Below, piece by piece: positions 1-64,000 of a DNA stretch of 64,000 nucleotides. The translations under genes were made by a program, and so were the position numbers. A model generated the notes under the pieces. That model saw only the letters and a program-made list of their open reading frames with translations. It did not search any database and had not been told where the DNA came from. The stretch lies in sequence record PQ464595.1, one strand, 5' to 3'. Each line of letters starts with the position of its first letter. The first letter of the stretch is position 1.

Positions 1-413
1 TCTTCAGTTTCATAGTAACGGTACTTTTTATAGGTAACATGTTTTTTAGGTTCACCAATTAATAATGTTAACTGGTTTCTAACCATAGATGCCATAACCG
101 AACGAATAGAAGGATCAGTTTGTTCATCTAATGTTGAATTGAGAATTTCTGCATAATGAGCGTACTGTACTTTTCGTTGTTCATATTCAAGTTGTGATAA
201 TGAATCGTTTAACGCATCACCATAAATGTCACGAACTTCAATTTCTGTATCAGTAATTCCTAAACAATATCCTTCATTAGAACTAAGGCGTATAGTTCCA
301 TCTGGATCAATTTCGTATTGATACAAATCAAAAGATGTATTCAGCAATTCACCTAAACCAGAAAGTACTGCTATTGTAAATTCTTCATTATTAGTAACCG
401 TAGTTTCTTCCAT
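1..413 (-). CDS. hypothetical protein (runs off the window start)
   Basis: Manual translation: ATG at 413, open to position 1 (MEETTVTNNEEF...). Confidence 0.7.
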   Translation of the reverse strand, partial: MEETTVTNNEEFTIAVLSGLGELLNTSFDLYQYEIDPDGTIRLSSNEGYCLGITDTEIEVRDIYGDALNDSLSQLEYEQRKVQYAHYAEILNSTLDEQTDPSIRSVMASMVRNQLTLLIGEPKKHVTYKKYRYYETE

Positions 414-458
414 ATTGTACCTATAAAAATAGGGAGCAATTTGCTCCCTTCATAATCA

Positions 459-647
459 TTAATTAGATTGGTTTTGACTTGGGTCTACTGGAGCATCAGG
501 TTGAACAGCAGATTCGTCAGTACTTGGTGCGTCAATGCCATTAGGATCGGCAGGGATACCAACATCGAGAACTGAATTTTCAGGCTCTTTGTTGAGTGCG
601 GCAAATACTGATTTGATCCAAGACCAAATTTTACTTAATAGATTCAT
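459..647 (-). CDS. small hypothetical protein, acidic Pro-rich tail
   Basis: ORF track; GGAG SD upstream. Confidence 0.7.
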   Translation of the reverse strand: MNLLSKIWSWIKSVFAALNKEPENSVLDVGIPADPNGIDAPSTDESAVQPDAPVDPSQNQSN

Positions 648-723
648 GTAAGTACTCCTAAAATGAACAGAACTTTGTTCTGCTAATTATTTAATTCAAG
701 AGTACTTACACAGAAGGTAAATT

Positions 724-1302
724 TTATTTTCCAGTTGTAACAGTTGTAACAGGAGGCACTTGTTCCTTCTTCATATGTACATTAACTGCTGGAACACAGC
801 TTACGGATGTATCCCAAGTTACACTATTGGAAACCACGTAACAATTAGCATCCGGTTGTTCTACTTTTTTCATATAGTAAACATCTTTGCCCGAAGTACC
901 GATAATCTGAAGCTTACCAGCATTAGGAGCCAGTTGAGGTGAATCATCTTCTGATTCCTCTTGCTGAACTTCTGCTGGTTCAGGTTCTTCCGGTTTAGCT
1001 ACTGGAGTATTCTCAGAACTGGTGCTTTGAACTTCCTTTTGCTCAACAACCGGAGCTTCGTCTACTGAAGTACTAGTTGTAGTACTTGTCGTAGGTGACG
1101 CATCAGACTGTTTCTCCGTACCAGATGTGGTAGGAGTATTAACCGCTGGAGCTTTCGCTTGTTCAGGTGTTTTAGTCGGTTTATCAGCAGCAGGTGATGA
1201 TACCGGAACATCTGAAGGAAACGGTTCACAACCGGATAGCAGTACTGAAGTTGTTGCTACTACGAGTGTCATAACTATTGCTAAACGTTTCATTATATAC
1301 AT
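724..1302 (-). CDS. putative lipoprotein with Pro/Thr/Glu-rich linker
   Basis: Basic N-terminus, hydrophobic stretch, lipobox LSG-C. Confidence 0.7.
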   Translation of the reverse strand: MYIMKRLAIVMTLVVATTSVLLSGCEPFPSDVPVSSPAADKPTKTPEQAKAPAVNTPTTSGTEKQSDASPTTSTTTSTSVDEAPVVEQKEVQSTSSENTPVAKPEEPEPAEVQQEESEDDSPQLAPNAGKLQIIGTSGKDVYYMKKVEQPDANCYVVSNSVTWDTSVSCVPAVNVHMKKEQVPPVTTVTTGK

Positions 1303-1504
1303 ATACCCTGTTAGTGTTTGTAATCACCTGGTACTTCTTACATTTCACCTAAGTAGCGAGCTACAATATAGTAATCTGGAGTTTCTTCAGGTAAATCTTT
1401 ATTACATTCAGTTACAGCAGCATTGGCTTCTTCAATGGTATCAAAACCACGATGCCAAATTTCACCCCAACCACGTTCTGATTCAATATACTTAACGATG
1501 TGTT

Positions 1505-2401
1505 TCATACAATATCCTTCATAAAGTCAAACCATTTAAGATGTTTACTAAGAACACTTGTTCGTTGATCATCACTATCACGTTCAACCGCAGGTATTAT
1601 TTCTTCATCATAATTTCCGTCTTTAACTAATTCAATAAAAATTGAACCTTCATCATAACCAATGATAAGTTCTTGGTTATCATAATCGGATGGCAATTTT
1701 TTGTTCAGTTTATTTTTCATAAAACATGAAGATAAACTTAAAGCTTTTTTAAAATTTTCATATGATTTTTCACTTTTAAAATCATCACGATGAATTAATG
1801 ATTCATCGGCAACATTAAAATATCGCTGCTCAGCACCTGTTACTTTGTGTACAGGTTTATCCCAGCGACTGTACATAACTATTGTTAATTGTTTAATATC
1901 AACAACAGAGTCGTCATCTTCAAAGCTAAATCCCCACAATCCAGTGTACGGATTACGTTCAATTCGTGATACGGTATTGCATAGATTTCCACTTTTGAAT
2001 GGGTTTCCTGATTTTTTAATAACTAATGATCCTGACAAATTACAGTGTTCACGCCAAACTTGATAATCTTCTTGACGCATATATTCGCGACGATCTTCAG
2101 ATTTGGCAACAAACCATTTTGGAATGTCATATGAATTATAATTACGAATAACATCAGCGTAATATACTTCATCACAATCAAAAGTTGGAGTAATTAAAAT
2201 ATCAACTTCTGCTGGAATCTTATCAAGTTTCCCTTCATAATGCATCCAACGTGCTACTTCAGAACCTTCATGGAACACCTCACCGTTCTCTTTACCCATT
2301 TCATAATCTGTCGCAATGATTTCCAGCATTTTGCTGGTTAACATACGAGAAGAAGGGCTGATACAGATAAGAACAGAACGCATAGGCTTGATAGTTGGCA
2401 T
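1505..2401 (-). CDS. hypothetical protein
   Basis: 298-aa ORF on the coding strand; no family recognised. Confidence 0.75.
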   Translation of the reverse strand: MPTIKPMRSVLICISPSSRMLTSKMLEIIATDYEMGKENGEVFHEGSEVARWMHYEGKLDKIPAEVDILITPTFDCDEVYYADVIRNYNSYDIPKWFVAKSEDRREYMRQEDYQVWREHCNLSGSLVIKKSGNPFKSGNLCNTVSRIERNPYTGLWGFSFEDDDSVVDIKQLTIVMYSRWDKPVHKVTGAEQRYFNVADESLIHRDDFKSEKSYENFKKALSLSSCFMKNKLNKKLPSDYDNQELIIGYDEGSIFIELVKDGNYDEEIIPAVERDSDDQRTSVLSKHLKWFDFMKDIV

Positions 2402-2422
2402 GATATTCTCTCTTTATTAAAA

Positions 2423-2505
2423 GTTGAGTATAATAGGGGTTTCACCTACACTGACGACCAGCATTACCTGTTAAAATCGCTGCTCTATAATTAAGCTATA
2501 TACTC
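2423..2505 (-). ncRNA. tRNA-like RNA with 17-nt expanded anticodon loop and atypical T loop
   Basis: Acceptor GAGTATA/TATACTC, D arm GCTT..GAGC, stem GCGAT/GTCGT, T-like arm with TGAAAC loop. Confidence 0.6.
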
Positions 2506-2510
2506 TAAAT

Positions 2511-2598
2511 TGGTGGTACGGGTAGGATTCGAACCTACGTAGCCCTTTAGGACGCCTGATTTACAGTCAGGTGGTTTTAGCCACTCACCCACCATACC
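2511..2598 (-). tRNA. tRNA-Tyr(GTA)
   Basis: Full cloverleaf, loop CTGTAAA, long variable arm, CCA. Confidence 0.95.
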
Positions 2599-3284
2599 AG
2601 TTATATGATAGTACTACATCGTGTCAGTACTATCAAGTTTTTTCGTTAAAAGTCTGGATGTTCATCTTTCATTTAACGTACTCCACGTGGTTTACAGAAT
2701 AGCAGTACTCATGATCGTAATAAGAACTACCGAACGCACCTTTAAGAATTTGAATATTGTTCTTTAAACAATATTCTTCGAACACGCTAATGTTCGCAAA
2801 TACTTTAAACGGTACTTTATGAGAACTATCTTCATAGCGATGATAGTAATCAACTGCTACTACTTGAGTCGTCATGTTTACGCTCCGCTTCAGATTTTCG
2901 AATATGCTCTATCGCATCTTTAAACCGATTATACATGGCTGGATTGTTCAAGTCAAGCCCATTGTTAGCTGAGTTTTCACCCATACATGCGTGAATCCCT
3001 TCGCAGCCACAATGAGGGCATTTGCCAAGCTTTACCATATTCGTTTGCCGATTAGGAACGCACCTGAAATGATAGTCATCGCAATCGCAGTTACCCATGC
3101 CGCAAATTTTACCACACCTAATACAAAGAATCCAAAGGTCATTGCTGCTGGCCCGATTGTAAATAGCTGCCAAAGAGCAACAAGAACCGCACCGGTACAC
3201 AATGAACCGAAGAATACTTGTACTGTTGTTATGATAAATGCGACAATCGCAAAGAACACAACACCAATAGAATCTTTCATGATT

Positions 3285-4249
3285 TTACCTTATTTTAGTT
3301 TTCCTGAATCCTTGAACTCCTTCGAGTTTGTTGATCTCACGAACAACTTCTTCTACTGAGTCGAAGATTCGGGATTTATTACCACTGTACATCACTTCAC
3401 CATTTTTAGTGATACAGTATCCCCAGCCACCAGAACCATGTTCACGAGAAACCCCATAAGGACTCGGTGGTAATGCAGCTTCAGGGTTGACTACCTGGTT
3501 GAATAACCGTGCGGAAGTCTTTTTATTCATTACGTAAACAATACAAATGGTAATAAACGCAATGAGACAACAGAATAGCAATACTTGAATATCACTCATG
3601 ATATTAATCCAATGTTGTTACACGAACACGATCAAGTTTTTCATAAACATTCATCTGGTTTAAAGCGGATTTTAAATCCAGATAAACATCAAAAGCACCT
3701 TGAGTTCCGGCAATATTGATATACTTATCATTTTTCAAAATAGTATACCCGTATTGACCATTATTACTTTTAGCACGTTTTAGTGTATATGGGCTTTCTG
3801 GTAAATCAGATTCTGGATTATCATGAACCCGTACCGTTTTTATATAAATGTCTGCGGCAATTCGCTTCACATTAAAATAAGTGAGACAAGCAGCACAGAA
3901 CATAACGATTGCGGCAATTAATAGAGGATGCATATTACACCACCTTAGTATGTGTATAACCTTCCAACTGCTCTAGCTCATTCAGTGATGTTTGAGCTTC
4001 TTTCGCAGTACTGAAACGCCGATCCACATGCATTGTATTACCTTTATAGATGTAATACAGGTCTTTGTTTTGATATGTATTCCAGTATCGTGCGATACGA
4101 TACGGAGACTGTTTGAGTTCACCAGGTTTAGGTTCTTCTACTAAACGAACATAAAGAATACTGGCAATCCTAAGATAGCCAAAGTACGAAAGCATCGCAG
4201 CCAACAAAAGCATAGTAGATACGATAAGCAAAACAATATTAGTCGTCAT
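3285..4249 (-). CDS. three tandem paralogous membrane-anchored proteins (3935-4249, 3604-3933, 3285-3599)
   Basis: Each 104-109 aa, N-terminal TM helix, shared SPY motif and A..(S/E)(L/I)N..E.(L) tail. Confidence 0.75.
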
Positions 4250-4554
4250 ATTATGCTTTCCCGTTCAGTACTGAACAATACCACTGAAGTAATTCAAGGT
4301 ACGCTTGTTCTTCGTAATTACGTTCTTTGATAGAACGCATCGCTCGCATATCATCAATGATCCATTGTTCCGGTTTCATCTTCATCGTCCTCTATAGGTG
4401 AATCCAAATCAACTTCAACACCAGCAGTGAGTTCTTTAATGTGATTCCACATTTCAGTACTGACTGGTACGAGGTTTTCAGGATGTTCATCAATATCTTT
4501 GGATAAAAAATCCAAGAATTTTTCTTCGGTGCTTTTCATATGTACCTTAAAAGT

Positions 4555-4631
4555 TAGTACCCCGTCCGAGACTCGAACTCGGAACCTTCCGATTAAAAGT
4601 CGGATATTCTAACCAATTGAATTAACGAGGC
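4555..4631 (-). tRNA. tRNA-Lys(TTT)
   Basis: Cloverleaf, loop CTTTTAA; 3' end A-CTA. Confidence 0.95.
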
Positions 4632-5326
4632 ATTGAAAAGGCAATTACTTGCCTTTATTTTCGTCCAATTTCTTGAACATATCCAGAAGTTTATCTGCTT
4701 TTTCATCAACAGTACCTTCTAGATGGATAGTCTTAGCGTTTAGATTCAATAACGCAGCAACTTGTTCAGGATCAACATTATCGAATTCGTCAATAATGAT
4801 AACACCTTTAGGGTCGCCGTGAATTGTTCCACGTTGAATGAAATCATCATCAACATTCATTGACTGCTCAATGAAGTCTTCAAGACCTTTATTCTTTTGT
4901 GGTTCCATCTTTACCATCCTGAGTGAGTGTTTTAACTCGACTTGTTCCTAACTTCTTTCCGCAATCCTTACAGATGCGTTGATATTCAAGTACTGTAAGA
5001 TTCGGTTTATAATGAATTTTACAAACTTCCATACTGACATAATGCCCACAAAATAGCTGTTTGAAAAAGTTCATTATTAATTAAGGCTCAAGTATATCCA
5101 TAATTTCATCTGGATATTCATAGCTACATGCTACGATACCATTGATAACTTCACCATTTTCAGGATCAACTAAGTTACCATTGAATAATTGGAATTCTTC
5201 TTCTGGTTCAGAACCAGAAATATCTTTTACTTCATAACCTGCCATTCTAGCAAGTTGTTCGATTTGTTTACGATTGAGAATCATAACTTTCCTTATTAGG
5301 GGAACCGGAGTTCCCCACGTAGACGA

Positions 5327-5794: not shown

Positions 5795-5825
5795 TTCCGG
5801 TTTCCCATTCTGATTTAAGGATAAT

Positions 5826-6933: not shown

Positions 6934-7009
6934 TGTCCGTGTGGAAGGATTTGAACCTTCGACCCCTCCGCCCCAAACGGAGTACTCTACCAAACTGAGC
7001 CACACACGG
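6934..7009 (-). tRNA. tRNA-Pro(TGG), second copy
   Basis: Cloverleaf, loop TTTGGGG. Confidence 0.93.
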
Positions 7010-11987: not shown

Positions 11988-11995
11988 ATTAATAC

Positions 11996-12110
11996 TGGAA
12001 TTTATTTCGTTTTAGGCGGCTGCTCTCCCAACTGAGCTACAGTACTAGTACTGACAGGACTCGAACCTGCGACATGCTGCGTGATAGAAGTTAGTTGCTG
12101 TTAAATTCCA
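11996..12110 (-). ncRNA. CAGCAA module E5 carrying a circularly permuted tRNA domain
   Basis: Order: stem, ACAGCAA, anticodon 3' half, T arm (GCAGG TTCGAGT CCTGT), closed acceptor CAGTACT-AGTACTG, D arm (GCTC AGTTGGGA GAGC), stem. Confidence 0.8.
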
Positions 12111-12392: not shown

Positions 12393-12529
12393 AAGAATTC
12401 ATCGTTTATTGGATAGCCGTGTCTACCTATTTCACCATCACTATTCAGTACTGACATAGTTCGTAGGACTCGAACCTACACGCCATAAGGCCGCTATTTG
12501 GGTTAACATTTAGTTGCTGTTGAATTCTT
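12393..12529 (-). ncRNA. CAGCAA module E6 carrying a circularly permuted class-II (Leu-like) tRNA domain
   Basis: Variable arm, T arm GTAGG TTCGAGT CCTAC, acceptor closed by a TCAGTACTGA hairpin, D arm GTG AAATAGGTAGA CAC, GCTAT/ATAGC stem. Confidence 0.78.
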
Positions 12530-14212: not shown

Positions 14213-14336
14213 TGCGAGAAAGGTTGGACTCGAACCAACGACCAGGCCATTAAAAGTGGATGAAGTATGGTTGCTGAGAAATTACATTACAGTAATTTTT
14301 GGGTTCTACCTGCTCTACCAACTGAGCTACTTTCTC
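14213..14336 (-). tRNA. tRNA-Lys(TTT) interrupted by a 49-nt CAGCAA insert (14260-14308) in the anticodon stem
   Basis: Deleting the insert gives the perfect arm GGCCA-CTTTTAA-TGGCC; acceptor, D and T arms are intact. Confidence 0.75.
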
Positions 14337-14937: not shown

Positions 14938-14938
14938 T

Positions 14939-15012
14939 TAGCGTTCCCAACGGGGTTCGAACCCGTGTTGCCTGAGTGAAAGTCAGGTATCCTACCGCTA
15001 GATGATGGGAAC
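14939..15012 (-). tRNA. tRNA-Glu(TTC)
   Basis: Cloverleaf, loop CTTTCAC, G73; 3' CTA. Confidence 0.95.
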
Positions 15013-22285: not shown

Positions 22286-22404
22286 TGCGGTGAGTACAGG
22301 AATCGAACCTGTGACTTCGGCGTGAAAGGCAATTGTTTGATTGCTGTTAGATTCAGTACTGGAATCCATTTTTTTACGCTATTTTACCACTAAACTAACT
22401 CACC
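22286..22404 (-). tRNA. tRNA-Glu(TTC) interrupted by a 46-nt CAGCAA insert (22331-22376) at 29/30
   Basis: Deleting the insert gives GCGGC-CTTTCAC-GCCGA; acceptor GGTGAGT/ACTCACC, G73. Confidence 0.75.
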
Positions 22405-23627: not shown

Positions 23628-23707
23628 TAGTGCGAGGGGATGGACTTGAACCACCGACACGGAGTTACCCTAAGATAATCTTGCTCTACCATCTGAGCTA
23701 CCCTCGC
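23628..23707 (-). tRNA. tRNA-like gene with aberrant anticodon arm (anticodon not assignable)
   Basis: Perfect acceptor GCGAGGG/CCCTCGC, D and T arms; anticodon/variable region about 5 nt too long with irregular pairing (AGATTATCTTAGGGTAACTCCG). Confidence 0.6.
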
Positions 23708-24244: not shown

Positions 24245-24359
24245 TGTGGAGAGGGGTGGATTCGAACCACCGTACCGTTCTTATGAATGAAATTTATGGA
24301 TGCCGTAAGATTCCATCTGGAATCGCTTTTCGTGTCCTGGGCCGCTAGACGACCTCTCC
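24245..24359 (-). tRNA. tRNA-CAT-like gene interrupted by a 39-nt CAGCAA-family insert (24292-24330; core CGGCAT)
   Basis: Deleting the insert gives CGTTC-ATTCATAA-GAACG (8-nt loop); the insert has a GATTCC AGAT GGAATC stem. Confidence 0.6.
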
Positions 24360-30607: not shown

Positions 30608-30718
30608 GGTGCTAAGAACAGGATTCGAACCTGTAAGGAAACCTCGCGGTACTTCCCACGTCCTATTGTCGCTTTCGCTATCGTCAGACGCTACGTTTAC
30701 CAATTCCGTCATCTCAGC
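30608..30718 (-). ncRNA. class-II tRNA scaffold with a 24-nt expanded anticodon loop
   Basis: GCTGAGA/TCTTAGC, Leu-like D arm, GCGTC/GACGT stem, loop contains GC-GAAA-GC, long variable hairpin, T arm. Confidence 0.7.
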
Positions 30719-30881: not shown

Positions 30882-30956
30882 TGTGGCTCATACCAGATTC
30901 GAACTGGTGTGGACAGAGATTTAGAGTCTCCCGCTACGCCTCTCAGCTAATGAGCC
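30882..30956 (-). tRNA. amber suppressor tRNA (anticodon CTA)
   Basis: Cloverleaf GGCTCAT/ATGAGCC, arm GGAGA-CTCTAAA-TCTCT, A73. Confidence 0.9.
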
Positions 30957-36916: not shown

Positions 36917-37801
36917 TCACGAGTCTGACTGTTTAGATAGGTTAACATCGAATATCTCTCTTAATAGATGTTCAATTACTGGTACTGTCCAACCATTACC
37001 AAGCATTTTGTATGCTTGTGTGTTAGAGGACACTTTAAAGAAGTCATCAGGAACTCCCTGAAGACGACAACATTCTACCACGCTGAGCTTCCTGTAGTCA
37101 ACCCCATTTTTGCCATTTTCAATCAAAAATGCCTTTGAGATATTTGGATTAGAAAACACAAGCTGTCTACGGGATTTGTTAAAGTACTGATTACAATCAC
37201 CACCTTTGAAATAGTTCGCATCTATACAATAAGATTTCGATCTATCTGTATGTCCTGATTCTAAGATAGTACTTAAATCTGGAGATAACATTAATGCTGG
37301 TGGTACAATGTAGTTGTCAGTACTAACCCAATAGTAACGTTGTCTAAAATGGGCAGTATAATGTTGAGAGTTAATTAGATGTGGTGTTCTTCCAATAATA
37401 CCAGAACAGTATTCTTCGAAGTCCTTCTTCATCTTAACATTCTCGAACAAGTACTTCACATCTGGATTAACACTCTTGATGTGATTAAAAATATCAACCA
37501 TCGTATGGAATAGCATTCCACGAGGATCAGTTGTTCCACCTTGCTTACCAGCTACAGACCAAGCCTGGCAGGGGAATCCACCCATCAGTAAGTCTATTGA
37601 ACTCCAGTCAATATCCCATTCTTCCCATTTCGTAACATCGCCCAATTGAACAATGTCGGGGAAGTTCTCTTGACTTTCCGCAATTGCGTACTTATCAATC
37701 TCTGACGAGTAATATGTTTGTACTGGTACACCAGCATTCTGTAATGCCATGTACCCACAAGACATGCCGTTGAATAACGACAGTACTGTAATTGGTTCCA
37801 T
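36917..37801 (-). CDS. DNA (cytosine-5)-methyltransferase
   Basis: Motif I LSLFNG, motif IV GGFPCQ, motif VI ENV, motif X GNGW. Confidence 0.93.
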   Translation of the reverse strand: MEPITVLSLFNGMSCGYMALQNAGVPVQTYYSSEIDKYAIAESQENFPDIVQLGDVTKWEEWDIDWSSIDLLMGGFPCQAWSVAGKQGGTTDPRGMLFHTMVDIFNHIKSVNPDVKYLFENVKMKKDFEEYCSGIIGRTPHLINSQHYTAHFRQRYYWVSTDNYIVPPALMLSPDLSTILESGHTDRSKSYCIDANYFKGGDCNQYFNKSRRQLVFSNPNISKAFLIENGKNGVDYRKLSVVECCRLQGVPDDFFKVSSNTQAYKMLGNGWTVPVIEHLLREIFDVNLSKQSDS

Positions 37802-40063: not shown

Positions 40064-42051
40064 TTCTAATTCTCCGAGTAGCTTCTAAAATATTATCACA
40101 AAATTCAATGTGAGCGATTATAGCATCCATCGGGAGTTCCGTCAAGTCCTGTCGGGTCATTTCCATGAAATATCCTTCCTCAGTACAAATCTTCCTACAA
40201 CGGGTGAAGTTAATAATTCCATCCGGTGCTGAATGACTATAATGACCACTATAACGATTAGTATAATACATCGTTAGGGTATCATTCCGAGAATCATAAT
40301 TCATGTAAAACGTTCTACCCGTATGAGGCTTATAGATTACTTCTACAAGCCCTTCATCGTTACATTTAATCGTGTAGTTTTCAGAAACATGAGTAAATGT
40401 AAAATAACAATGATCAGCACGGTTGACAGTCTTATAGACAGTACTAGCTCGTTTTGCGACCCTGCCTAATATGTCGCTTATTGGGTTGGCTTTCCAACTC
40501 ATTCAAAATTCCTTCTAAGTAGTCAGAACCTTCTGAGTAATCATTACGTTCCAACCATTCTTTAAGGAATTTTACCGCAAAACTTTGATCTTCTGTAGAC
40601 ATAATCCGATTCCGTACAACACGCACAAAAAAGCGTACATAGTCCAGATAATCAGATGAAACAGAACCTTTTTCTTCACAAAATTCGATACACGACTGAA
40701 CATAATGCCTCGTTAGATCCATAGTTCGTTCAACTTCACTCGAACGTTCCCATGCGTTAATCCACACTTTATAACGTTCGAACCCCGCTTTAAAGATATA
40801 TTCCTCTGGTACGTAACCAGACCATACATCATTGATATAAACGCAGTACTCACTAACTGACGGATGCCAATGTACGTATGTAGTACTCCACATAACCTCT
40901 GGAAATTCATCAGCAAGATAATCAATGAAATCTTCATTCAGATTAGGATCTTTTCGTTCAAATTTATATCCACGTTGCCAGTTAGCGTTGTCTGTCATTT
41001 TATCAGGTCATCCATAAAAGAGCAATCATCTTTTTTCGGTGTTTCAACGATGACGATACCACCGTTATAATCTGGATGTTCTTCATTCCAGTATTCTTCT
41101 AACCAATCTTCATCTTCATAGCAGTTATGAACATCAAATTCAATATCAATGCCACGATCTGCCAGAATCTTATTAACTTGACTAAGAACGTATTCAGCAC
41201 TATCCCATACAGAACGTGCGTAATCCATTTCTTCATCAGTTACATTAAATGTTACCTTAGTACTCATTTAGTTTCACCTTTGTAATCTTCTTCTTCGTGC
41301 CATGAACAGCCGACTTCACAATCACCATCTACTAGTGACCATTGAATGCCATGAAGAATATTACCCTGTAATACATATGATTCACCCCAAGCTTCTTCTG
41401 AGCCAATATTAAGGCTTTCAATGAAACGCTCGAACGCAATTTCTAGATCAACCTGATCACCTTCAGGTAATGTCAAACAAATAGTTTTATTCATTTTCAT
41501 CCGTTGGATAGTTATAGAACCCGTAGCCACTAACTTCTTCATACAGTTGTCGCATAATACGACGATTTGCTTCTTGGCGGCGTTGATGTTCTTCAGTGGT
41601 TTCTAATTCAAATTTTCCATCACGCACAATCATACCACGTAAACCGTGACCATGATCATAACGCATACACATACTTTCAATCAAACGAGCATCTGGCTCT
41701 TTTGGTAAATTTGGTTTCATTACTTGTCCTTTATTCCGTTAAGTACTTCCATGAACTTCTCTACATCAGTACTTTCAAAGAATAAATGTTCCCATTGAGT
41801 CATTTTCTGAAAGTGCCAAGCTTCATCAGCAAGACGAGAGAAGTTAGGATATTTATAACGGCGTTTTGAACCCATCCAATCTTCAACTACAAGAAAGTCA
41901 CTACCAGGAAAATAACGAAAATTCCAGCACTTGTTGTACAAGAATGTTAAATCAATTTCAATCATCTGAACACCATCTTCTTTCTTACAGCGTTCAGTTA
42001 ATTCATATGCCAAGTTTTCTGAGCATTCGAAGTACTGTTCAATGAAATTCA

Positions 42052-42873
42052 TCATAAGGACAACATAGCCTCAACGATTGATGGAATATCACATTCGTAG
42101 AATCCAGCACAATTGATATTATTAACTTCCAGTACTTTATACCCTTCAGACGTTTCAGCAAAATCCATTACAAAGGCATCTGCTGGAACCCATTTTTTAC
42201 ATAGTTCTTCAGCTTTATCAACTATATACTTAGGTGCAGTTTGTGCAAGACGAACTTCACCATGTAATTTATAAAGTGACCAAGCTACGACTTCACCTTT
42301 TACAATAAAGAGACGATATTCAGAAATAATATCTTTACATGAAGAAACCATTATTTCAAAATCATCAGATACAGTTTCTTTAAATTGGTTAATAGCATAT
42401 TCAAAATTATCACGTTCAATAACAGTAGCTATCATCTTTTTAGTATCATGTACTGGACGAATAAAGACTTTATCAGTCCAGATAGGATTTAACCTTTCTG
42501 TAATATTGGATACAGTACCGAAAGATGCATCCCCATTAAGAAAATTAGGTCTTCCCCAATATGTAGTCATTTGTTCAAATATGTTGAAGTTTTCATTTAT
42601 AAATCCACCAGGAGTATAACCTTCTTCAACAAGTTGATTAGCTAATGCATAACTTCCAAATGACATAGTGGGTACTGATTTATCAAAGTACTTTTCATAT
42701 GAAGCATCAGTATAATCAGTAACATCTTCAGGAACAAATATATTCAAAAATGGAACTGGTTTAACTGAAGTGTGAGATATGTTATTCTGTACCATATATT
42801 CTTTCATGATACGAAAACCATCTTCATTGAAATACTTATCCATTATTAGAAAGTGCATGTATATCCTTAGCAA
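42052..42873 (-). CDS. ATP-grasp domain protein (DUF4343/R2K-like)
   Basis: VFIRP..D.K, EYR.F, FVMD, VLEVN.IN.AGFY. Confidence 0.85.
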   Translation of the reverse strand: MLRIYMHFLIMDKYFNEDGFRIMKEYMVQNNISHTSVKPVPFLNIFVPEDVTDYTDASYEKYFDKSVPTMSFGSYALANQLVEEGYTPGGFINENFNIFEQMTTYWGRPNFLNGDASFGTVSNITERLNPIWTDKVFIRPVHDTKKMIATVIERDNFEYAINQFKETVSDDFEIMVSSCKDIISEYRLFIVKGEVVAWSLYKLHGEVRLAQTAPKYIVDKAEELCKKWVPADAFVMDFAETSEGYKVLEVNNINCAGFYECDIPSIVEAMLSL

Positions 42874-43141
42874 TTAGCGTGAAAATAATCCAAGTACTCT
42901 CGTGGTATTTCAAAACCACCATCAACGAGCGTACCATGACGTTCAGAAGTTAGTTCAAGTACTAAAAATTCATCACCAACTTTGATACCATCACGTAACG
43001 CCCAGCCATATACTTCAAGAAATTCTGGATCAACTAATTTCAGTTTATCATATCCAGGTCGTAAATCAGACCATGTATAACACCATGTGAAGTTATTTGA
43101 TTCATTAACAGAATTAGAACTCATGTAGTACTCCAGAAATG

Positions 43142-48354: not shown

Positions 48355-49626
48355 TTATTTTGCTTTCAGATGAAGATCTAAAGTTTTATTCCAGATTAAG
48401 CTACGGAGGAATTTATTTTCCTCTTTCTCTAAATCATCTTTAGTGAATACTACTACATCGTTATCACCAATTAGGTTATTGATGTAAGTAATATGTTCTT
48501 CTAAATCATCTTCACCTTCGTACCATTCAGTTACACGTTCCACGATTTGCGGTACTGTTACTTCCTGCCATGAGGTGGAGAACTTTTGAGTTACAACATG
48601 TTCATCTTCTTCCCACGGAGCAGCCAACGCACCTACAGCAGCAGCAACTTTGTGTAAGAATACACTATCTGCCGCACGATCATGTACTTGACCAGAAATG
48701 ATGATTGGACGATACATAAGATTACGTTCTTGCATACGACTGTTGAAGTACATTGCTTCGAACTCAAGAGCACGAATAGCATTCAAATCCAGTTCAACAG
48801 AACGGTCAGGATTCTTTTCATTGAACCGTGTTACTGATTCTACTACTTCCCGATAGATGCTGCCAGTACTGTAAGCATATTGCATCTTATGTGAATCACG
48901 ATCCATCAGACGCATTTCAGCCATACGATTACAACGGTCATGCATCTGATCTTCGGTCATCACACCGCTTTTCAGATCTTCCTGATACATAGAATAGAAC
49001 TCTTTAGCAATAATAGCTTTTTCGACTTCTAAATCACGTGTCATTTCTTTCTGTAAAGAAATTTGGAAATTGCGATTTTCATAAGGATGGAAATCACTAT
49101 CATACCCAACACCTTCAGGATAACCAATATATACTTCGTGGTCTTCTTCCAGAATCAGTTGATATACACTTTCGTGAATAGCCATGATACCGAGATACGG
49201 AGTATTGTAGTTACCATAACCCTGAAGCCAGAAACATTCACGATGATGCATGTCAAATACTAACGGCCAGGTAAGGTCAGCAGCAGGAATATCAAGGAAA
49301 TCTTCTTCCCATCCATTATACTCCTTACCTTCTTCGCGAGTTTGCATCAGATAGTTTTGACGCAGTTTCATCATAATGAAACGAGCTTCAATACTTGATT
49401 CGTCAACTGTATAGTCGTCGTAATCAGCGTACTTAGCTTTCAGTGGGAATCCACCGATTACCTGAAAATCATCCCAAGGATAACACTGACAGCCATGAGC
49501 TAAGCCAGTTTTCTTTACGTCTTTTTCAACATAAAGCTTATTTGATGCTAAAAGAAAAAGGCGAACTTCATCGCCTTCAAGAATTGGCGTATTAGAAACC
49601 GCACAAGTGGTATTGAACGAACCCAT
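48355..49626 (-). CDS. conserved jumbo-phage hypothetical protein
   Basis: 423-aa ORF beginning MGSFNTTCAVS.TPI..GD.V. Confidence 0.75.
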   Translation of the reverse strand: MGSFNTTCAVSNTPILEGDEVRLFLLASNKLYVEKDVKKTGLAHGCQCYPWDDFQVIGGFPLKAKYADYDDYTVDESSIEARFIMMKLRQNYLMQTREEGKEYNGWEEDFLDIPAADLTWPLVFDMHHRECFWLQGYGNYNTPYLGIMAIHESVYQLILEEDHEVYIGYPEGVGYDSDFHPYENRNFQISLQKEMTRDLEVEKAIIAKEFYSMYQEDLKSGVMTEDQMHDRCNRMAEMRLMDRDSHKMQYAYSTGSIYREVVESVTRFNEKNPDRSVELDLNAIRALEFEAMYFNSRMQERNLMYRPIIISGQVHDRAADSVFLHKVAAAVGALAAPWEEDEHVVTQKFSTSWQEVTVPQIVERVTEWYEGEDDLEEHITYINNLIGDNDVVVFTKDDLEKEENKFLRSLIWNKTLDLHLKAK

Positions 49627-53894: not shown

Positions 53895-53914
53895 GTCCAG
53901 TACTAGTACTGGAC
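53895..53914. repeat. perfect 20-bp palindrome GTCCAGTACTAGTACTGGAC (terminator-like)
   Basis: Intergenic, followed by a T tract on the + strand; contains two AGTACT. Confidence 0.7.
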
Positions 53915-54160
53915 TTTTTTGTTACAGCTCAACCAGAGTTTCAGTCCAGTGAGTACCTTCCAGGTCGAACGTACCAACTTCGTACATATCGTCACCGTTA
54001 GGATCTTCCCACCAGTCGAATTCAACGTCTGGATGTGGTAGACCTTCGAATCCGATAGTTTTACCGGATTTATCAGTCGCGATGAAGTTGATGTTCTCAG
54101 GAACATGGACTTCAGTACCGTGATAATTTACGGCTTTCATTTTTAGTAGTTCAATTGCTT

Positions 54161-58818: not shown

Positions 58819-59748
58819 TCAGTTATTCCAGTCGTAAAGTCTTTCAGCTAAAGATACAATCCCTTCGGAATTGGTAAGCTTCTGTACCCATTCTTCAGGA
58901 ATAGATTTAATACCATAGAAAGCTCCAGCCAACTGACCAGTAATAGCAGCTACAGTATCTGCGTCATCTCCTAAATTAGCAGCTAACAGTACTGCCTCTT
59001 GGAATGACGATGTTTTTGCGAAGCACCATAAAGCAGCTTCTAATGAGTCAATGACGTATCCAGTACTCTTAATTTCAGAACGTTCTTTCCAGAGATAGTT
59101 TTCAATATCAATGGTACTCTTTACTACATCATTAGTGATACCAAACTTTTCTGGTTCACGAATTTCAAGAATATCAAGTTTATCTGAACCATGAATAGCA
59201 CGGTTAATCATAATAGAAAAAGCAATACATGATTGTACTGGTACTTCATTGGCATGAGTTGTCGTTGAACTCAATGCGGCATAACGAATCAGATCAACGA
59301 AAGCGTCTGAATACATTTCAGGAGTATTATAGAAAATTGGAATAGGAGCTAAACGCATTAGACTTCCATTACCCGCATCCATGAAATGTGTGTTATGTTC
59401 TAAAGTTTTATTCTGTAGGAATCCACGAATAGCAATACGTGTAGTTGCTCCAATATCGAAACATACTCCAGTACTACTCATATATCCATAATTCATCCAG
59501 TTAGCATAACGTGTTAACTGGTCTTCAGAATCAAAACCATAACGAGCTAACAGACTAGTACCTAAGCATAACGCCATACTGGTATCATCAGTCCATTCGC
59601 CAGGTTGTAAATCAAATGGCCCACCACCAACCATATCAGTGATGTGTTCATAGGTATCACGCTCATGGAATTCCAGTACTGTACCTAATGCGTCACCAAC
59701 TGCTAATCCTACTAGAGCACCAATAGCTCTTTCTCGGTTGTCACTCAT
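58819..59748 (-). CDS. ADP-ribosylglycohydrolase (DraG/ARH family)
   Basis: GLAVGDALG, WTDDT, GNGSLMR, TH, GDDADT motifs. Confidence 0.93.
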   Translation of the reverse strand: MSDNRERAIGALVGLAVGDALGTVLEFHERDTYEHITDMVGGGPFDLQPGEWTDDTSMALCLGTSLLARYGFDSEDQLTRYANWMNYGYMSSTGVCFDIGATTRIAIRGFLQNKTLEHNTHFMDAGNGSLMRLAPIPIFYNTPEMYSDAFVDLIRYAALSSTTTHANEVPVQSCIAFSIMINRAIHGSDKLDILEIREPEKFGITNDVVKSTIDIENYLWKERSEIKSTGYVIDSLEAALWCFAKTSSFQEAVLLAANLGDDADTVAAITGQLAGAFYGIKSIPEEWVQKLTNSEGIVSLAERLYDWNN

Positions 59749-59756
59749 AATATTCC

Positions 59757-60227
59757 TTAGTGAAACTTAACCGCACCATTATTGGATGCGAGTTCAAACA
59801 TTGTTTTCCATTCGTAGTACTTTGTGAGATTATATCCTTCCAGATGTAAACAAGCATGTTCTTCAAAATCAGTGAAGTCCTTAGCCAGTTTAGTACTACA
59901 CATAGTACCGATTACTCCTTCACAATCAGAGTAATTAATCAGTTCATAGAATGGATAATAACCATTTTCATCAAGAGGTAAACGAGTGGCTAACTGACGT
60001 AAAGTACTACGCCATGAATTATATCCACCATAGGAACCTGCCCTCATATGATTACTGTCATCATAACTGTACAAATATGAGGCATCAACATCTATATGTT
60101 GATAGCAATCTTGATCGTTGTGAATATAGAAATATGTCCAGCCATGATCATATGCTTCATCTACATCCATATTTTCGCGTTGTGTTTCTTTCTTGAGATT
60201 ACTGTACGCGGTAATATCTAAACCCAT
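59757..60227 (-). CDS. conserved phage hypothetical protein (MGLD family)
   Basis: MGLDI...LINYSDCEG. Confidence 0.72.
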   Translation of the reverse strand: MGLDITAYSNLKKETQRENMDVDEAYDHGWTYFYIHNDQDCYQHIDVDASYLYSYDDSNHMRAGSYGGYNSWRSTLRQLATRLPLDENGYYPFYELINYSDCEGVIGTMCSTKLAKDFTDFEEHACLHLEGYNLTKYYEWKTMFELASNNGAVKFH

Positions 60228-60269
60228 TTGAAAATTTACCTTATGTGATTTGCCATTCTTCGAATGTCA

Positions 60270-60640
60270 AAGAATTATCGTCAGTACTCACTCTCGTTCG
60301 TACTAGACTCAATTCTATTTCTAAATTAAACATTATTCACTGACGAGATTTGGGGAGGACATTTTCATCCCCCCACAGGGGAATGAAGACGTAAAAAAAG
60401 TACACGTGTAGGTGTACTGAATTGTCTGACGATGATAGTCGTCGGAATCTATCGAATAGTGAATTTCTCTGAATTTTAGATACAACTTCTCTGTACTAGA
60501 ATTAGAGAGCGAAAGCGGGTTGCTCGGTTTCTCTCATATCACTGTCATATGCAACGGTCGGAGTTTTATACATTGCTCCACTCAGTACTGATCTATTCGA
60601 CCAAACCTGTACTGTGCCATAAATGGCTCCCTTAGCGTAT
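60270..60640 (+). ncRNA. candidate large structured non-coding element
   Basis: ORF-free; TCGTCAGT/ACTGACGA, TTCAT-CCCC/GGGG-ATGAA, AGTACAC/GTGTACT, CTGACGA/TCGTCGG, GAGAG/CTCTC; G-U pairs favour the + strand. Confidence 0.45.
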
Positions 60641-60893
60641 TGGTAAGTGACCTTATATGTCTATCTAGGAAGTGTCTTATATGCTTATCACACTTCTTTA
60701 TACAGCCGCATTGCCGTGATTCATAGTCTTATATCGTGTTGGATTGACTGCTATTACTCTAACGGGTTTCTTTTGCTGTTCGTACTGATTGAACTACTCA
60801 ACTATCCAATTACGTTTTCATCGGATCAGGGTTCACTCGTCAAGGACTATCCTTGTCAATCAGAGTTGTATCTAAAAATATTGTTGTACCATC

Positions 60894-60922
60894 ATTATAC
60901 CAGATAAAAACGGCACGATCCA
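60894..60922 (-). promoter_or_regulatory. TGAAACG-class promoter (TGGATCG variant)
   Basis: TGGATCG-N16-TATAAT with TGG before the -10. Confidence 0.55.
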
Positions 60923-60934
60923 AAAATCTCAATT

Positions 60935-60963
60935 AAAAAAATACCAGCACAAGGCTGGTATTT
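60935..60963 (-). terminator. intrinsic terminator
   Basis: AAATACCAGC/GCTGGTATTT hairpin plus U tract. Confidence 0.8.
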
Positions 60964-60970
60964 GTGGTTC

Positions 60971-63151
60971 TTATAGGTCGGTTTTCTCAATGAGCATAAC
61001 GTGACCATTTACAGGTACTTCATAGAATGCGAAGTTTGGTACATGTTCAATGTAATAGTAATAATCATCTAATTCATAATTAGAACGAATTTCATCAGTT
61101 ACTAAAGATAGTGGAATGAAGAAATCACCTTTTCCATCATTTATAATTACTTTTACTAATGAATAGCTGTTGTTGTTTTCAACATCTAGTTTTACACCTT
61201 TCTTTACACCGGAAATACGGGTTTCAGTACGTTCCTTACGGGAAGCATGAGCCGTCAAATCTTCCCAATCAATGATTAGGTTAACTTCGTCTTTTAGTGC
61301 GTTGAAATCTTGTTCCATATCAAGTAGAGCTTTGCGAATCTTAGCAGTACTTTCGCGTACAAAGGTATTGTGCTTCTGAACACGATTCAAGAACTCTTGA
61401 ACAACGTCACGGTCTAGTACTTGATTCAGTTCAGATACGAACTTAGCAGTAATAGCAGGTTGTTCTGGTTTTTCAATCCAACCAGTGTCAAGACTGTTCA
61501 TCATATCGTGGAACTTCTGAATCTTCTCAATAGGAGTATTTGAACCTTCCATGTACTTGATTAGTACTGTAGTCGGTGTGAACAAATCCCATCCAACGAT
61601 ATTGTGAGAAGCAGCATATTCATCAAATGAACCGAAGCTGATTAGAGCTACTTTAAGTTCAATGGTTTCAATTACTGTATCACCAATACTGAATTGAGCA
61701 AGTTCTTCTTCAGATAGTTCTTCATGCCCTTCAGCATCTGGTGCTGTAGCAGTATATGTGTTGTTGTCTGATACTTCGAAATCAACATCAGCTAGACGGA
61801 TCTTAGAACCACCTAAAATAGTTGCTTCACCATCAACTTTCATAACATCTAGTAGTTTTTGCATTTCAGCAATATCACGTTCACGTCCTGTCAACAGTGA
61901 CAAAGTACGTTCTGGTAGTTTGTATGGTTTATCATTAGCAATAGCATCTAAATCTGAAATCAGATTAGCTATGTCTTGAGATGTGCGATCAGTTGGTTGA
62001 CCATCAATGAACTTTAGCCAATCTTCATGACCTGGGTGACGTGGACTACCTGGATGTGTAGGTTCTGACGCACCTTGCACAACAGGGATTTCAGTACCTT
62101 CAAGATCCATACGTAGTGCTTCATCCATAGTTAGGTTCTCACCTAGTACTTCACGAACTGAAATCATTAGTTCTTTTAGAATGTCTTGTTCAGTACGATC
62201 AGATTTCTGAAGTTCAGTTAGGCTTTCTTGAAGATCGAAATCAAATACAAATTCAGCAAGATTCTGATCTTCGATATTATATGTTTCCATAACTGCTTTG
62301 ATAGCTTCTAGGTATTCACCTTCACTAATCTTAATGTTATCAACTAAGAAAACATCATCAGACATGAATCGTGCTACCTCGGCTTCTAGTTCTTCAAATG
62401 CCTGAACAATATCCGCATAGTTTTCATCAGAAAATGCATCAAGTATATTACGCATTTCTTGTACTTCTTTTTCATGACGTGCCGCAGCATCAATTTTAGC
62501 ATTTTTCTCTGCGTCGATAGTCAGTTCACGTACTGCTTTCAGATTATCACGAATTTCCTGAATTTGTTCTTCAGTTAGTTCATCATCTGGTATGATAGTT
62601 TCAGGTTCTTCTGAACGAGAAGTTTGTAGCAGACGGACAGTACCGGTAGCTTGATTATAAGTACTGTAATCAATAACAACGTTACATTGTTTCTCAATGA
62701 GTACTAGACCATTTTCAGTACTGATAGATACTAGACCATCGTAAGTACTAAGTTGACCTAGTTTGAATTCTTTAGTTAAAAGATAATCAATTTGTGGGTC
62801 ACGGTCAAAGATGATTGCCATTGCTGCTAGTGGTTCATCAGATTTTTGTTCAGCAAATGCTTCCTGTACTGAACCTTCAGTGTAAGAAGAATTTTCCTTA
62901 ACAATATCTTCAACGACATTAATTAGGCTGAATTCTTTACCATCAACTTCTAGTTCAAACGTTACTAGACCTTTGGTTGGAATAACTTCAATGTACATGA
63001 TAGCATGTTTTGGAGTTACCGAGTAACGAACGATACTAACATTACCGATAGCTGACTGTAGCTTGTCCTTTAGGACTTGAACAGACGTAATGCCTTCGAT
63101 GTTAACTAGTACTTGAATGACGGATTTAGTATTAATCATATAACACTCCAT
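60971..63151 (-). CDS. large acidic hypothetical protein, possibly late/virion-associated
   Basis: 726 aa, Glu/Asp-rich, coiled-coil segments; TATAAATA 23 nt upstream. Confidence 0.75.
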   Translation of the reverse strand: MECYMINTKSVIQVLVNIEGITSVQVLKDKLQSAIGNVSIVRYSVTPKHAIMYIEVIPTKGLVTFELEVDGKEFSLINVVEDIVKENSSYTEGSVQEAFAEQKSDEPLAAMAIIFDRDPQIDYLLTKEFKLGQLSTYDGLVSISTENGLVLIEKQCNVVIDYSTYNQATGTVRLLQTSRSEEPETIIPDDELTEEQIQEIRDNLKAVRELTIDAEKNAKIDAAARHEKEVQEMRNILDAFSDENYADIVQAFEELEAEVARFMSDDVFLVDNIKISEGEYLEAIKAVMETYNIEDQNLAEFVFDFDLQESLTELQKSDRTEQDILKELMISVREVLGENLTMDEALRMDLEGTEIPVVQGASEPTHPGSPRHPGHEDWLKFIDGQPTDRTSQDIANLISDLDAIANDKPYKLPERTLSLLTGRERDIAEMQKLLDVMKVDGEATILGGSKIRLADVDFEVSDNNTYTATAPDAEGHEELSEEELAQFSIGDTVIETIELKVALISFGSFDEYAASHNIVGWDLFTPTTVLIKYMEGSNTPIEKIQKFHDMMNSLDTGWIEKPEQPAITAKFVSELNQVLDRDVVQEFLNRVQKHNTFVRESTAKIRKALLDMEQDFNALKDEVNLIIDWEDLTAHASRKERTETRISGVKKGVKLDVENNNSYSLVKVIINDGKGDFFIPLSLVTDEIRSNYELDDYYYYIEHVPNFAFYEVPVNGHVMLIEKTDL

Positions 63152-63173
63152 GTTGTATAAAAAAAGGTAGAAC

Positions 63174-63181
63174 TATTTATA
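63174..63181 (-). promoter_or_regulatory. T4-type late promoter motif TATAAATA
   Basis: Exact TATAAATA in the intergenic gap upstream of the 726-aa gene. Confidence 0.55.
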
Positions 63182-63199
63182 AAATTGATCATTCTTTGA

Positions 63200-63712
63200 T
63201 CAGTTCGATTCTTTGAGGACAGTTCTAATATCCTCGTAACTTGCACTGAGCCAGTCGAATCCTTCTGGCATTATAACTCTACCATGATACTCATAGTAAT
63301 GAACAAATGGTAAAGTACTTTCTTGTAATAATTTGGCTATAGCTGGATTATGAGCAATCTTAGTTACTAACATATTCTCCATGATTTCTAAATCTTCATG
63401 AGATAATCCGAGAACGTCCAGCCTGTCGTCTCTATATTTACGTCCAGCTTTTTTGGCTTCGAAACCATGTAGTTCTCTGAGATCGTCATGTTGTTGACCT
63501 GTAAGATACCAGTACCAGAACCCTTCAGCACTGGTAAAGTACCCATAAGGTTCATAGACGAATGGAGAACGGGCGAAGTTTGATAGTAGTCTGCCTAATT
63601 CAGTTCTGGCTTGACTATAGATGTTGATGTGCGTTACGCCATCTTCTTCGGGGTCGTAAATGGGGGTTATATCGAATTCAAACATTTTACTTCCATGTGA
63701 AAAACCCCTCAC
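63200..63712 (-). CDS. NADAR-like protein
   Basis: LGRLLSNF...F.SAEG.W...AK..GR...K pattern as in phage NADAR (T4 gp30.3-like) proteins. Confidence 0.6.
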   Translation of the reverse strand: MRGFSHGSKMFEFDITPIYDPEEDGVTHINIYSQARTELGRLLSNFARSPFVYEPYGYFTSAEGFWYWYLTGQQHDDLRELHGFEAKKAGRKYRDDRLDVLGLSHEDLEIMENMLVTKIAHNPAIAKLLQESTLPFVHYYEYHGRVIMPEGFDWLSASYEDIRTVLKESN

Positions 63713-63729
63713 TAGGAGGGGTTCAGGTA

Positions 63730-63966
63730 TTAATATGGGTCTGAGTTGTGGGTATCATCACCTGGATTGCCACGAGTACGGTTAATGTCAATATAGACAC
63801 CAGCAGCGTTCTTGGCCTGACACTGATCCATCCACCACGAGTACTGCGTTTGAGCATTCGTGATCATACCTTGCGTGGAGCAAGAACCCATTTTGTACAG
63901 TTTAACTGAACATAACAGTGTAGCGATAATAACTGCTGCCAGCATAGTTTTTAGGAAGCGTTTCAT
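63730..63966 (-). CDS. small membrane-anchored hypothetical protein
   Basis: N-terminal hydrophobic helix. Confidence 0.65.
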   Translation of the reverse strand: MKRFLKTMLAAVIIATLLCSVKLYKMGSCSTQGMITNAQTQYSWWMDQCQAKNAAGVYIDINRTRGNPGDDTHNSDPY

Positions 63967-64000
63967 GTTATCACCGATAACGAGAACCCAATCATCCTTT

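Follow-up and report, generated by a model that had tools for sequence, protein, structure and literature searches.

The stretch of DNA analyzed here, a window of 64,000 bases, is 100% identical to positions 62001-126000 of the record of Erwinia phage Kaldavass (PQ464595.1; 366,556 bp), a jumbo myovirus of the genus Mimasvirus that belongs to the RaK2/GAP32/121Q-like group, distant kin of T4 (PMC11780129). The genes of the window, nearly all on the minus strand, are small and of the early type and include about 30 for tRNAs; the GC content is 38.9%. Scattered through it is the palindrome AGTACT, which occurs 208 times, that is, approximately once per 307 bases (~3.4 per kb). On the evidence of sequence comparison, this hexamer is a DNA-level, two-fold symmetric signal that is intrinsic to a clade of phages, has a coverage-like distribution, and is kept by selection. 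The clade comprises the enterobacterial RaK2-like jumbo phages of the genera Mimasvirus (including Kaldavass), Eneladusvirus, Alcyoneusvirus, and Asteriusvirus. The relatives and the remainder of Kaldavass were sampled as pieces of 25-50 kb; together with record positions 1-50 kb and 126-176 kb, the window brings the Kaldavass DNA covered to 164 kb.

The window-wide over-representation of AGTACT, pointed out in an earlier note made from the letters of this DNA, is real under every null model applied. The expected number of copies is 20.8 by base composition and 18.1 by a first-order Markov model, and 100 dinucleotide-preserving shuffles yielded 19.1±4.6 copies with a maximum of 31. The expectation of about 0.3 per kb given in the earlier note was right, because the GC content is 38.9%, and its local counts of seven copies in 58988-60008 and five in 42001-43000 are exact. 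The excess also persists in the codon-preserving shuffle that was proposed there, along with the Markov comparison, as a check. Using the deposited coordinates of the coding sequences (CDS), 182 copies are found in CDS versus 49.5±6.0 after synonymous-codon shuffling within genes (z=22, maximum 68) and 20.8±4.5 after shuffling of whole codons (z=36). The synonymous null is already inflated, since the sites themselves partly make the codon usage: 85 of the 308 AGT codons lie inside AGTACT. No hexamer of any kind is more over-represented in the window, and AGTACT is the sole strongly enriched palindromic hexamer. The nested words GTAC (2.6-fold) and AGTAC (5-fold) are enriched as a consequence; GTAC with other flanking bases is at most 2-fold enriched or absent, with no copies of CGTACG or GGTACC. 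The one-off neighbors of AGTACT are never depleted (ratios of 0.91-3.3), and those varying at the outer position, NGTACT, reach 2- to 3.3-fold.

Both coding and non-coding DNA carry the sites, as had been stated earlier: 180 are located wholly in CDS, 26 are intergenic, and only two fall in tRNA genes, which total ~2.2 kb. Sites are more frequent between genes, at 4.7 per kb, than in CDS, at 3.2 per kb. All three reading frames are used, with 83-85 copies read as AGT-ACT, 61-62 as xxA-GTA-CTx, and 35-36 as xAG-TAC-Txx. Where a peptide context can be encoded by AGTACT, it is written so in 56-68% of cases versus 10-14% expected from codon usage. The dipeptide Ser-Thr is enriched 1.88-fold versus 1.05-fold for the reverse Thr-Ser, and Val-Leu is enriched 1.41-fold while Leu-Val is not. 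This dependence on order indicates that the signal has shaped the protein sequences.

The bases flanking the hexamer on the sense strand are two-fold symmetric. Position -1 is C with a frequency of 0.40 and G with 0.08; position +1 is G with 0.48 and C with 0.04. The preferred extended form is thus the 8-base palindrome CAGTACTG, with 43 copies in the window. In the 164 kb of Kaldavass it occurs 110 times versus 2.4 expected (45-fold); AAGTACTT and TAGTACTA are each enriched approximately 10-fold, and GAGTACTC is found four times versus 2.1 expected. The C...G form predominates among the intergenic copies, and the few G-flanked intergenic copies overlap Shine-Dalgarno sequences (GGAGTACT...ATG). 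Symmetric flanks on a palindrome are a pointer to a dimeric binder of duplex DNA.

The sites are spread along the window without hot spots, and their spacing is near-random but slightly regular, with a coefficient of variation (CV) of 0.88 versus 0.99±0.07 for random placement and a variance-to-mean ratio of 0.64 in 1-kb bins. Each of the seven samples has a CV (0.79-0.97) below the 0.99 of random placement; the deviation reaches P<=0.05 in four of them, and variance-to-mean ratios go down to 0.48. These samples are partly homologous regions and hence not independent. The spacing has no helical periodicity of ~10.5 bases, and the one preference seen, for 3 bases, comes from coding. AGTACT is densest at the left end of the record, with 5.6 copies per kb over positions 1-25000 versus 2.6-3.3 per kb elsewhere, and no other sample has so regular a spacing (CV 0.81; variance/mean 0.48). 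Because CBB has a 22-kb terminal repeat, this dense left end may be a terminal or first-entering region.

Comparison with related genomes shows how the sites evolve. In an alignment of 38.6 kb between Kaldavass and XbC2 (~88% identity), no frequent hexamer is better conserved than AGTACT, of which 104 of 129 copies are retained (0.81) versus 0.55 for all hexamers. Among codons with unchanged first and second bases, the third position differs in 11 of 212 cases (5.2%) inside the sites and in 1996 of 9587 (20.8%) outside them (Fisher p=2.7e-10); against a codon-matched expectation of 36.2 changes, the 11 observed correspond to z=-5.0. The same holds across genera in protein-guided codon alignments at 67-69% nucleotide identity. 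A Kaldavass site is found at the same position in GAP32, CBB, or BF in 39-46% of cases versus 14-17% for hexamers generally, and where the peptide is identical, AGTACT is kept in 71-81% versus 35-38%. Taken over all comparisons, AGTACT is common to the related genomes with a positional retention of 0.39-0.82 over a background of 0.14-0.54. When Kaldavass and XbC2 are compared with outgroups, 57 sites turn out to be ancient and 30 to be common to these two phages alone; a further 20 were gained in one lineage, and 11 were lost. A rough estimate of neutral turnover, based on our own arithmetic, is ~45 losses and ~6 gains; therefore, losses are suppressed and gains are favored. As judged from these alignments, the AGTACT sites are under purifying selection at the DNA level.

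Every enterobacterial RaK2-like phage sampled (seven phages from four genera) has a 9- to 13-fold excess, and the flank bias is the same in each. The excess is genome-wide in Kaldavass as far as the sampled pieces extend, with 218 copies observed versus 16.7 expected in record positions 1-50 kb and 128 versus 15.5 in 126-176 kb, which hold replication and structural genes. The corresponding counts are 149 versus 13.3 in XbC2, 126 versus 11.5 in GAP32, 161 versus 13.0 in CBB, 130 versus 11.7 in Serratia phage BF, 73 versus 6.4 in RaK2, and 91 versus 9.9 in 121Q. More distant relatives on other hosts have no excess (PA5oct, 1 versus 8.8; Atu_ph07, 1 versus 3.6; XacN1, 0 versus 5.2), and neither does T4 (4 versus 5.8). 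The unrelated enterobacterial phages phi92 (1 versus 9.0) and T5 (2 versus 6.7) are depleted in AGTACT, as is usual for a restriction-type palindrome. Thus, the signal belongs to the phage clade and not to the host lineage. A 50-kb sample of Escherichia coli K-12 has 0.22 copies per kb, compared with 3.4 per kb in the phage.

The IMG/VR database was scanned for three clustered AGTACT, and the following applies to the loci listed by that scan; other clades may carry such sites as well. Dispersed sites were found among the examined loci in RaK2 itself (L034), in a fragment identical to GAP32 (L107), and in two further loci, L069 and L078. The latter two are judged RaK2-like from their C...G flanks, a GC content of 0.37, and the absence of GCGC only. 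Of the other high-count loci examined, most are tandem or coding repeats that show a regular period of, for example, 9, 18, 27, or 30 bases. When the loci were compared by tblastx with an incomplete reference set, L107 was confirmed, L022 weakly so, and no other. One host assignment deserves mention here. XbC2 (OP292654.1), ~88% identical to Kaldavass, is recorded with a Xanthomonas host; it carries all signatures of the enterobacterial clade, namely the AGTACT excess, the lack of GCGC, and the depletion of TGCA, while the genuine Xanthomonas jumbo phage XacN1 has none of the three.

The excess is unexpected because Kaldavass otherwise avoids palindromes to an extreme. The general statement that phages normally avoid them is borne out in the window, where 28 of the 64 palindromic hexamers are missing. 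The tetramer GCGC is absent altogether (0 versus 67 expected in the window and 0 in 164 kb of Kaldavass), and it is also absent from the XbC2, GAP32, CBB, BF, RaK2, and 121Q samples, where 11-71 copies were expected per sample. Its counts are normal in PA5oct (28 of 31 expected), Atu_ph07 (42 of 44), and T4 (40 of 43), and the E. coli sample has 7.1 copies per kb. The absence of GCGC and the excess of AGTACT thus follow the same phylogenetic boundary. The former may reflect a GCGC-specific nuclease encoded by the clade or a shared host defense. The depletion of TGCA (56 versus 257 expected in the window) has a narrower distribution, being strong only in Kaldavass and XbC2, while counts are normal in GAP32, CBB, BF, RaK2, and 121Q. 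The leftover copies are mostly TGCAT/ATGCA (165 of 398 expected), versus 24 of 210, 22 of 141, and 12 of 127 for TGCA[A/C/G]. TGCAT is the motif reported to carry an unidentified modification in Kaldavass (PMC11780129), and the pattern looks like one context being protected and the rest purged.

Some non-palindromic words depart from expectation as well. Chi of E. coli (GCTGGTGG) ranks first in enrichment among the 8-mers without GTAC, with 19 copies (7 on the plus and 12 on the minus strand) versus 1.6 expected in the 164 kb of Kaldavass; 13 of the 19 lie in record positions 1-50 kb, and an excess is also seen in the 121Q and T5 samples (4 versus 0.3 each). With both strands counted, GATGTC/GACATC (1 versus 36) and GAAGAG/CTCTTC (3 versus 29) are nearly absent from the window, which suggests that type IIS-like or type III-like targets are being avoided.

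Individual copies of AGTACT and the C5 cytosine methyltransferase that had been proposed as its partner are listed in the table below.

Features of the Kaldavass window discussed in the text (window coordinates)
Feature	Position	Strand	Context	Basis or details
C5 cytosine DNA methyltransferase (PF00145)	36917..37801	-		PDB and Pfam searches: generic small C5 methylase
Seven AGTACT in ~1 kb	58988..60008		ADP-ribosylglycohydrolase gene and neighbor	Starts 58988, 59062, 59470, 59675, 59816, 59892, 60003
Five AGTACT in ~1 kb	42031..42963			Starts 42031, 42131, 42687, 42893, 42958
Perfect 20-base palindrome with two abutting copies (GTCC-AGTACT-AGTACT-GGAC)	53895..53914		Intergenic	Reverse-complement identity
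Two abutting AGTACT	12041..12052		Permuted tRNA-like element	Sequence context
AGTACT as CAGTACTG	22355..22360	-	Hairpin tip in ~40-base insert of tRNA-like gene 22288-22404	Minimum-free-energy fold
AGTACT inside tRNA-Pro	6981..6986	-	tRNA-Pro 6935-7009	

The structural settings described earlier for three of these copies, namely the 53895 palindrome, the acceptor double site at 12041, and the hairpin insert at 22355, stand. The palindrome lies 11 and 28 bases from the flanking CDS, with T6 next on the plus strand; the region 53895-53920 looks like an intrinsic terminator for antisense (plus-strand) transcription, the genes around it being all on the minus strand. At 12041-12052 the halves CAGTACT and AGTACTG are the 3' and 5' acceptor strands of an element in which the order is T-arm, double site, and D-arm. 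This permuted tRNA-like element (~11990-12110, minus strand) has its T-arm and 3' acceptor joined to the 5' acceptor and D-arm by AGTACTAGTACT, and near 12447 a similar T-arm is followed by CAGTACTG; ARAGORN calls neither of the two. The hairpin copy had been assigned to an insert of tRNA-Glu. It does lie in a long tRNA-like gene, but the identity of this gene as tRNA-Glu is unconfirmed, and the tRNA-Glu called by ARAGORN at 14941-15012 contains no AGTACT.

The same gene is one of four long (109-122 bases) tRNA-like genes on the minus strand (14215-14336, 22288-22404, 24247-24359, and 30610-30718) that are annotated in the record, uncalled by ARAGORN, and carry inserts of ~35-45 bases after the anticodon-stem region. 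The inserts of 22288-22404 and 24247-24359 have a GATTCC...GGAATC-type hairpin in common. Two other minus-strand tRNAs, a suppressor-type tRNA with anticodon CTA, which reads UAG (30883-30956), and one whose anticodon loop has 8 bases (ttag; 23630-23707), are both conserved in XbC2, GAP32, BF, and CBB according to the annotations.

The explanation that we place first, with a probability somewhat short of even, is that AGTACT, with its optimum CAGTACTG, is a clade-wide selected mark on unmodified duplex DNA that is read by a two-fold symmetric factor. Such a factor would recognize the sequence itself; it would be encoded in the core genome of the clade and is most likely a DNA-binding protein that acts as a dimer. 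Sites every ~300 bases would let it coat or mark the phage chromosome over its entire length. A mark of this kind could tell phage DNA from host DNA, given 3.4 and 0.22 sites per kb, respectively, and could serve protection, compaction, or recruitment of the DNA machinery of the phage.

Several points weigh against this explanation. No reader protein was found, and the only annotated small helix-turn-helix protein that was checked has the wrong phyletic distribution: this HTH_37 protein (record positions 49199-49420) is confined to Mimasvirus and was rejected as a candidate. Pfam gave no match for four small proteins encoded downstream of intergenic double sites. The unmodified state of the sites has its basis in a single Tombo analysis of virion DNA, inspected by hand and taken here from the published summary table; AGTACT may still be modified transiently inside the cell. 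Because a palindrome has no strand bias, reading at the DNA and RNA levels is separated only by the symmetry of the flanks and the intergenic excess. Sequence alone does not tell selection apart from biased repair, if the latter is very strong and specific to the context, although a drive of that kind is argued against by the fact that none of the one-off neighbors is depleted. Finally, the relatives are represented by pieces of 25-50 kb.

Candidate readers may be sought among a group of proteins conserved in the clade. Genes annotated as "endonuclease" in RaK2 (L009, 8257-9405) and 121Q (L010, 10900-12363) encode CapR-homology repeats and a treble-clef zinc finger (PF21817, PF14311). We found no description of a function for these CapR-repeat proteins of the clade; being possibly DNA-binding, they deserve a look. 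The other clade nucleases that were checked are HNH homing-type enzymes.

The shared boundary of the AGTACT excess and the GCGC absence suggests that the clade tells its own DNA from that of the host by sequence. A rather speculative extension, which we regard as improbable in its full form, is that sequence-based discrimination of self and non-self takes the place of the hydroxymethylcytosine of T-even phages, with AGTACT as a positive and GCGC as a negative mark. In that case, the factor bound at AGTACT would protect or organize phage DNA, or recruit machinery to it, and the host chromosome would be open to destruction by a phage nuclease that recognizes GCGC in DNA.

Among the rival explanations, the one that fares best, although we consider it unlikely, is that a sequence-specific endonuclease encoded by the clade cuts or nicks AGTACT during infection. 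The resulting breaks would serve as starting points for recombination-dependent replication, as loading sites of the sliding clamp in late transcription, or as strand marks for a discrimination resembling mismatch repair. A palindrome of 6-8 bases with symmetric flanks is a typical target of a type II-like dimeric nuclease, and the slightly regular spacing fits a function that needs one site per stretch. The clade also has T4-type recombination and replication genes and many uncharacterized nucleases, including the CapR-repeat/zinc-finger proteins. On the other hand, no ScaI-like enzyme was identified, and a double-strand cutter with ~1,200 targets in its own genome (extrapolated from 3.4 per kb) would need tight control. 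Moreover, a nanopore study that sought strand-specific coverage drops reported nicks only in another phage (PMC11780129); therefore, the virion DNA of Kaldavass is not nicked at AGTACT, with its density of about one site per 300 bases.

A less probable scenario is that a phage enzyme, for example the C5 methyltransferase at 36917-37801, modifies AGTACT and that the abundance of this word follows from the modification. HIP1-type palindromes are linked to methyltransferases, which lends this scenario some precedent, and homologs of the enzyme are conserved in Mimasvirus, Asteriusvirus, Alcyoneusvirus, and Hallingskeid; the nanopore analysis that speaks against it was inspected by hand. In that comparison of native and amplified virion DNA, the only modified motifs reported for Kaldavass were GATC (N6-methyladenine), CCWGG (5-methylcytosine), and TGCAT (unknown modification), and the phage encodes three methyltransferases that match these motifs (PMC11780129). 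In Hallingskeid, which has the same C5 enzyme, only GATC and CCWGG were listed (PMC11780129). A modification of AGTACT at ~3.4 sites per kb would be hard to miss in such a comparison.

The phyletic distribution of the enzyme tells against the link as well. The syntenic locus of BF has no C5 methyltransferase despite the AGTACT excess of this phage, and Eneladusvirus is not among the matches listed in the organism tallies of the tblastn search; absence of the enzyme from BF is inferred from these two observations. Conversely, phi92 encodes a homolog with 50% identity and yet is depleted in AGTACT. The PDB and Pfam searches with the protein returned nothing on its target specificity. A role as the Dcm-like CCWGG methylase would fit the lack of CCWGG avoidance in Kaldavass (233 versus 126 expected), and the enzyme probably neither reads nor writes AGTACT. 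The deamination product AGTATT/AATACT is not depleted (66 versus 55.8, 1.18-fold). A drive by very-short-patch repair according to the Dcm/Vsr model was rejected because no donor or one-off word falls below 0.91-fold. The earlier note had proposed a modification or protein-binding mark, possibly linked to this methyltransferase. Protein binding remains the best reading, while modification and the link to the enzyme are unsupported.

We consider it very unlikely that AGTACT is a priming signal, that is, that a gp61-like primase uses an extended site within (C)AGTAC(TG), the palindrome priming both strands for replication in either direction. The T4 gp61 primase starts primers with pppAC, templated by 5'-GT, and AGTACT offers 5'-GT on both strands. 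The clade has a primase-helicase pair, and the spacing fits selection on coverage or density. However, known phage primases use trinucleotides, for which no enrichment is needed, and T4 has a homologous primase and no excess of AGTACT. Loss of a single priming site should also be nearly neutral, yet the sites are kept individually across genera.

Slightly less credible still is an origin as a by-product without function, resulting from codon or dipeptide usage, from avoidance of other words, or from a mutation or repair bias specific to the clade. Kaldavass codon usage does favor AGT, ACT, GTA, and TAC, many other words are forbidden in this genome, and biased repair can mimic conservation. 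Nonetheless, the excess survives the synonymous and whole-codon shuffles, occupies all frames, and is stronger in non-coding DNA, and the favored codons are largely a result of the sites. The absence of any depleted neighbor, the preference for Ser-Thr over Thr-Ser, and the at most 2-fold enrichment of GTAC in other contexts also speak against it. The shuffles, together with the spread over frames and the excess between genes, led us to reject an origin driven by codons, dipeptides, or tRNAs. A promoter, operator, or terminator motif was rejected in view of the near-random spacing and because 180 of the 208 copies (87%) lie in genes and the predicted promoters of the clade are different words (PMC5259590).

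The least plausible alternative is that the phages are loaded with sites for an enterobacterial protein, such as the nucleoid-occlusion factor SlmA, and thereby manipulate cell division or nucleoid organization: the signal is confined to phages of Enterobacterales, and the SlmA site GTGAGTACTCAC has an AGTACT core, but SlmA requires G1, T2, a purine at 3, A4, and G5 in each half-site (PMC3020112), whereas the position-3 flank of the phage sites prefers C (0.42-0.44) and disfavors G (0.07), and GT...AC arms are found in three of 208 sites (5 of 554). SlmA sites were rejected on the grounds of the missing arms and the wrong flank. The depletion of AGTACT in T5 and phi92 and its neutral count in T4 show, in addition, that there is no general host-driven pressure for it.

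We found no prior report of AGTACT in jumbo phages, and the paper on CBB (PMC5259590) does not mention it. It is unexpected that one palindrome should reach an 11-fold excess (45-fold for the 8-mer), be conserved at synonymous sites in four genera, and bend the amino-acid sequence. The signal implies a protein-DNA system that operates along the entire chromosome (366 kb) in giant phages of a widespread group; such a system could concern protection from host defenses, chromosome organization, replication, or packaging. AGTACT also provides a sequence signature by which the clade can be recognized in metagenomes, and a CAGTACTG oligonucleotide and ScaI are cheap experimental handles. In phage engineering and therapy, codon optimization or recoding would erase hundreds of selected sites, and hosts with a restriction enzyme of the ScaI/Eco255I type should be highly resistant to phages of the clade.

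Among known systems, ScaI and Eco255I share with the putative reader the very same hexamer and its recognition by a symmetric dimer. Restriction targets, however, are purged, as T5 and phi92 show, or else modified, while in the clade AGTACT is 11-fold enriched and no modification of it is reported (PMC11780129); no cognate enzyme or modification was found for it as a ScaI/Eco255I target. SlmA, Noc with its NBS sites, MatP/matS, and SeqA/GATC resemble it in having scattered palindromic sites and a dimeric DNA-organizing protein. These systems use tens of sites per chromosome, and the phage sites are devoid of the SlmA arms and have a flank that is disfavored in SlmA sites. In the related T4-like lineage, the hydroxymethylcytosine of T-even phages offers a possible analogy as a genome-wide mark of self. 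There the mark is a chemical modification of the base, whereas in the clade it would be the sequence itself, rich in AGTACT and free of GCGC.

The suggestion that AGTACT is a signal resembling HIP1, Chi, or the DNA uptake sequence (DUS) holds in that it is a word over-represented at the DNA level with the descriptive features of HIP-type palindromes. Chi, DUS and the uptake signal sequence (USS), and the FtsK-orienting polar sequences (KOPS) are likewise dense selected words that are read by a protein machine wherever they occur and mark self. They differ in being asymmetric and orientation-dependent and in occurring about once per 1-5 kb; AGTACT, together with its preferred flanks, is palindromic and 3-15 times denser. 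HIP1 (GCGATCGC) of cyanobacteria is a short over-represented palindrome as well, present in all frames and in non-coding DNA, conserved in related genomes, and of unresolved function. HIP1, however, belongs to bacteria, has a density of about one copy per kb, and receives methyl groups from orphan methyltransferases that are cognate to it, whereas AGTACT is viral, reaches ~3.4 per kb, has no reported modification, and persists in BF without the candidate methyltransferase at the syntenic locus; no cognate methyltransferase was found for it. Of the known systems, HIP1 and the functional words Chi, DUS/USS, and KOPS are nearest in kind to AGTACT.

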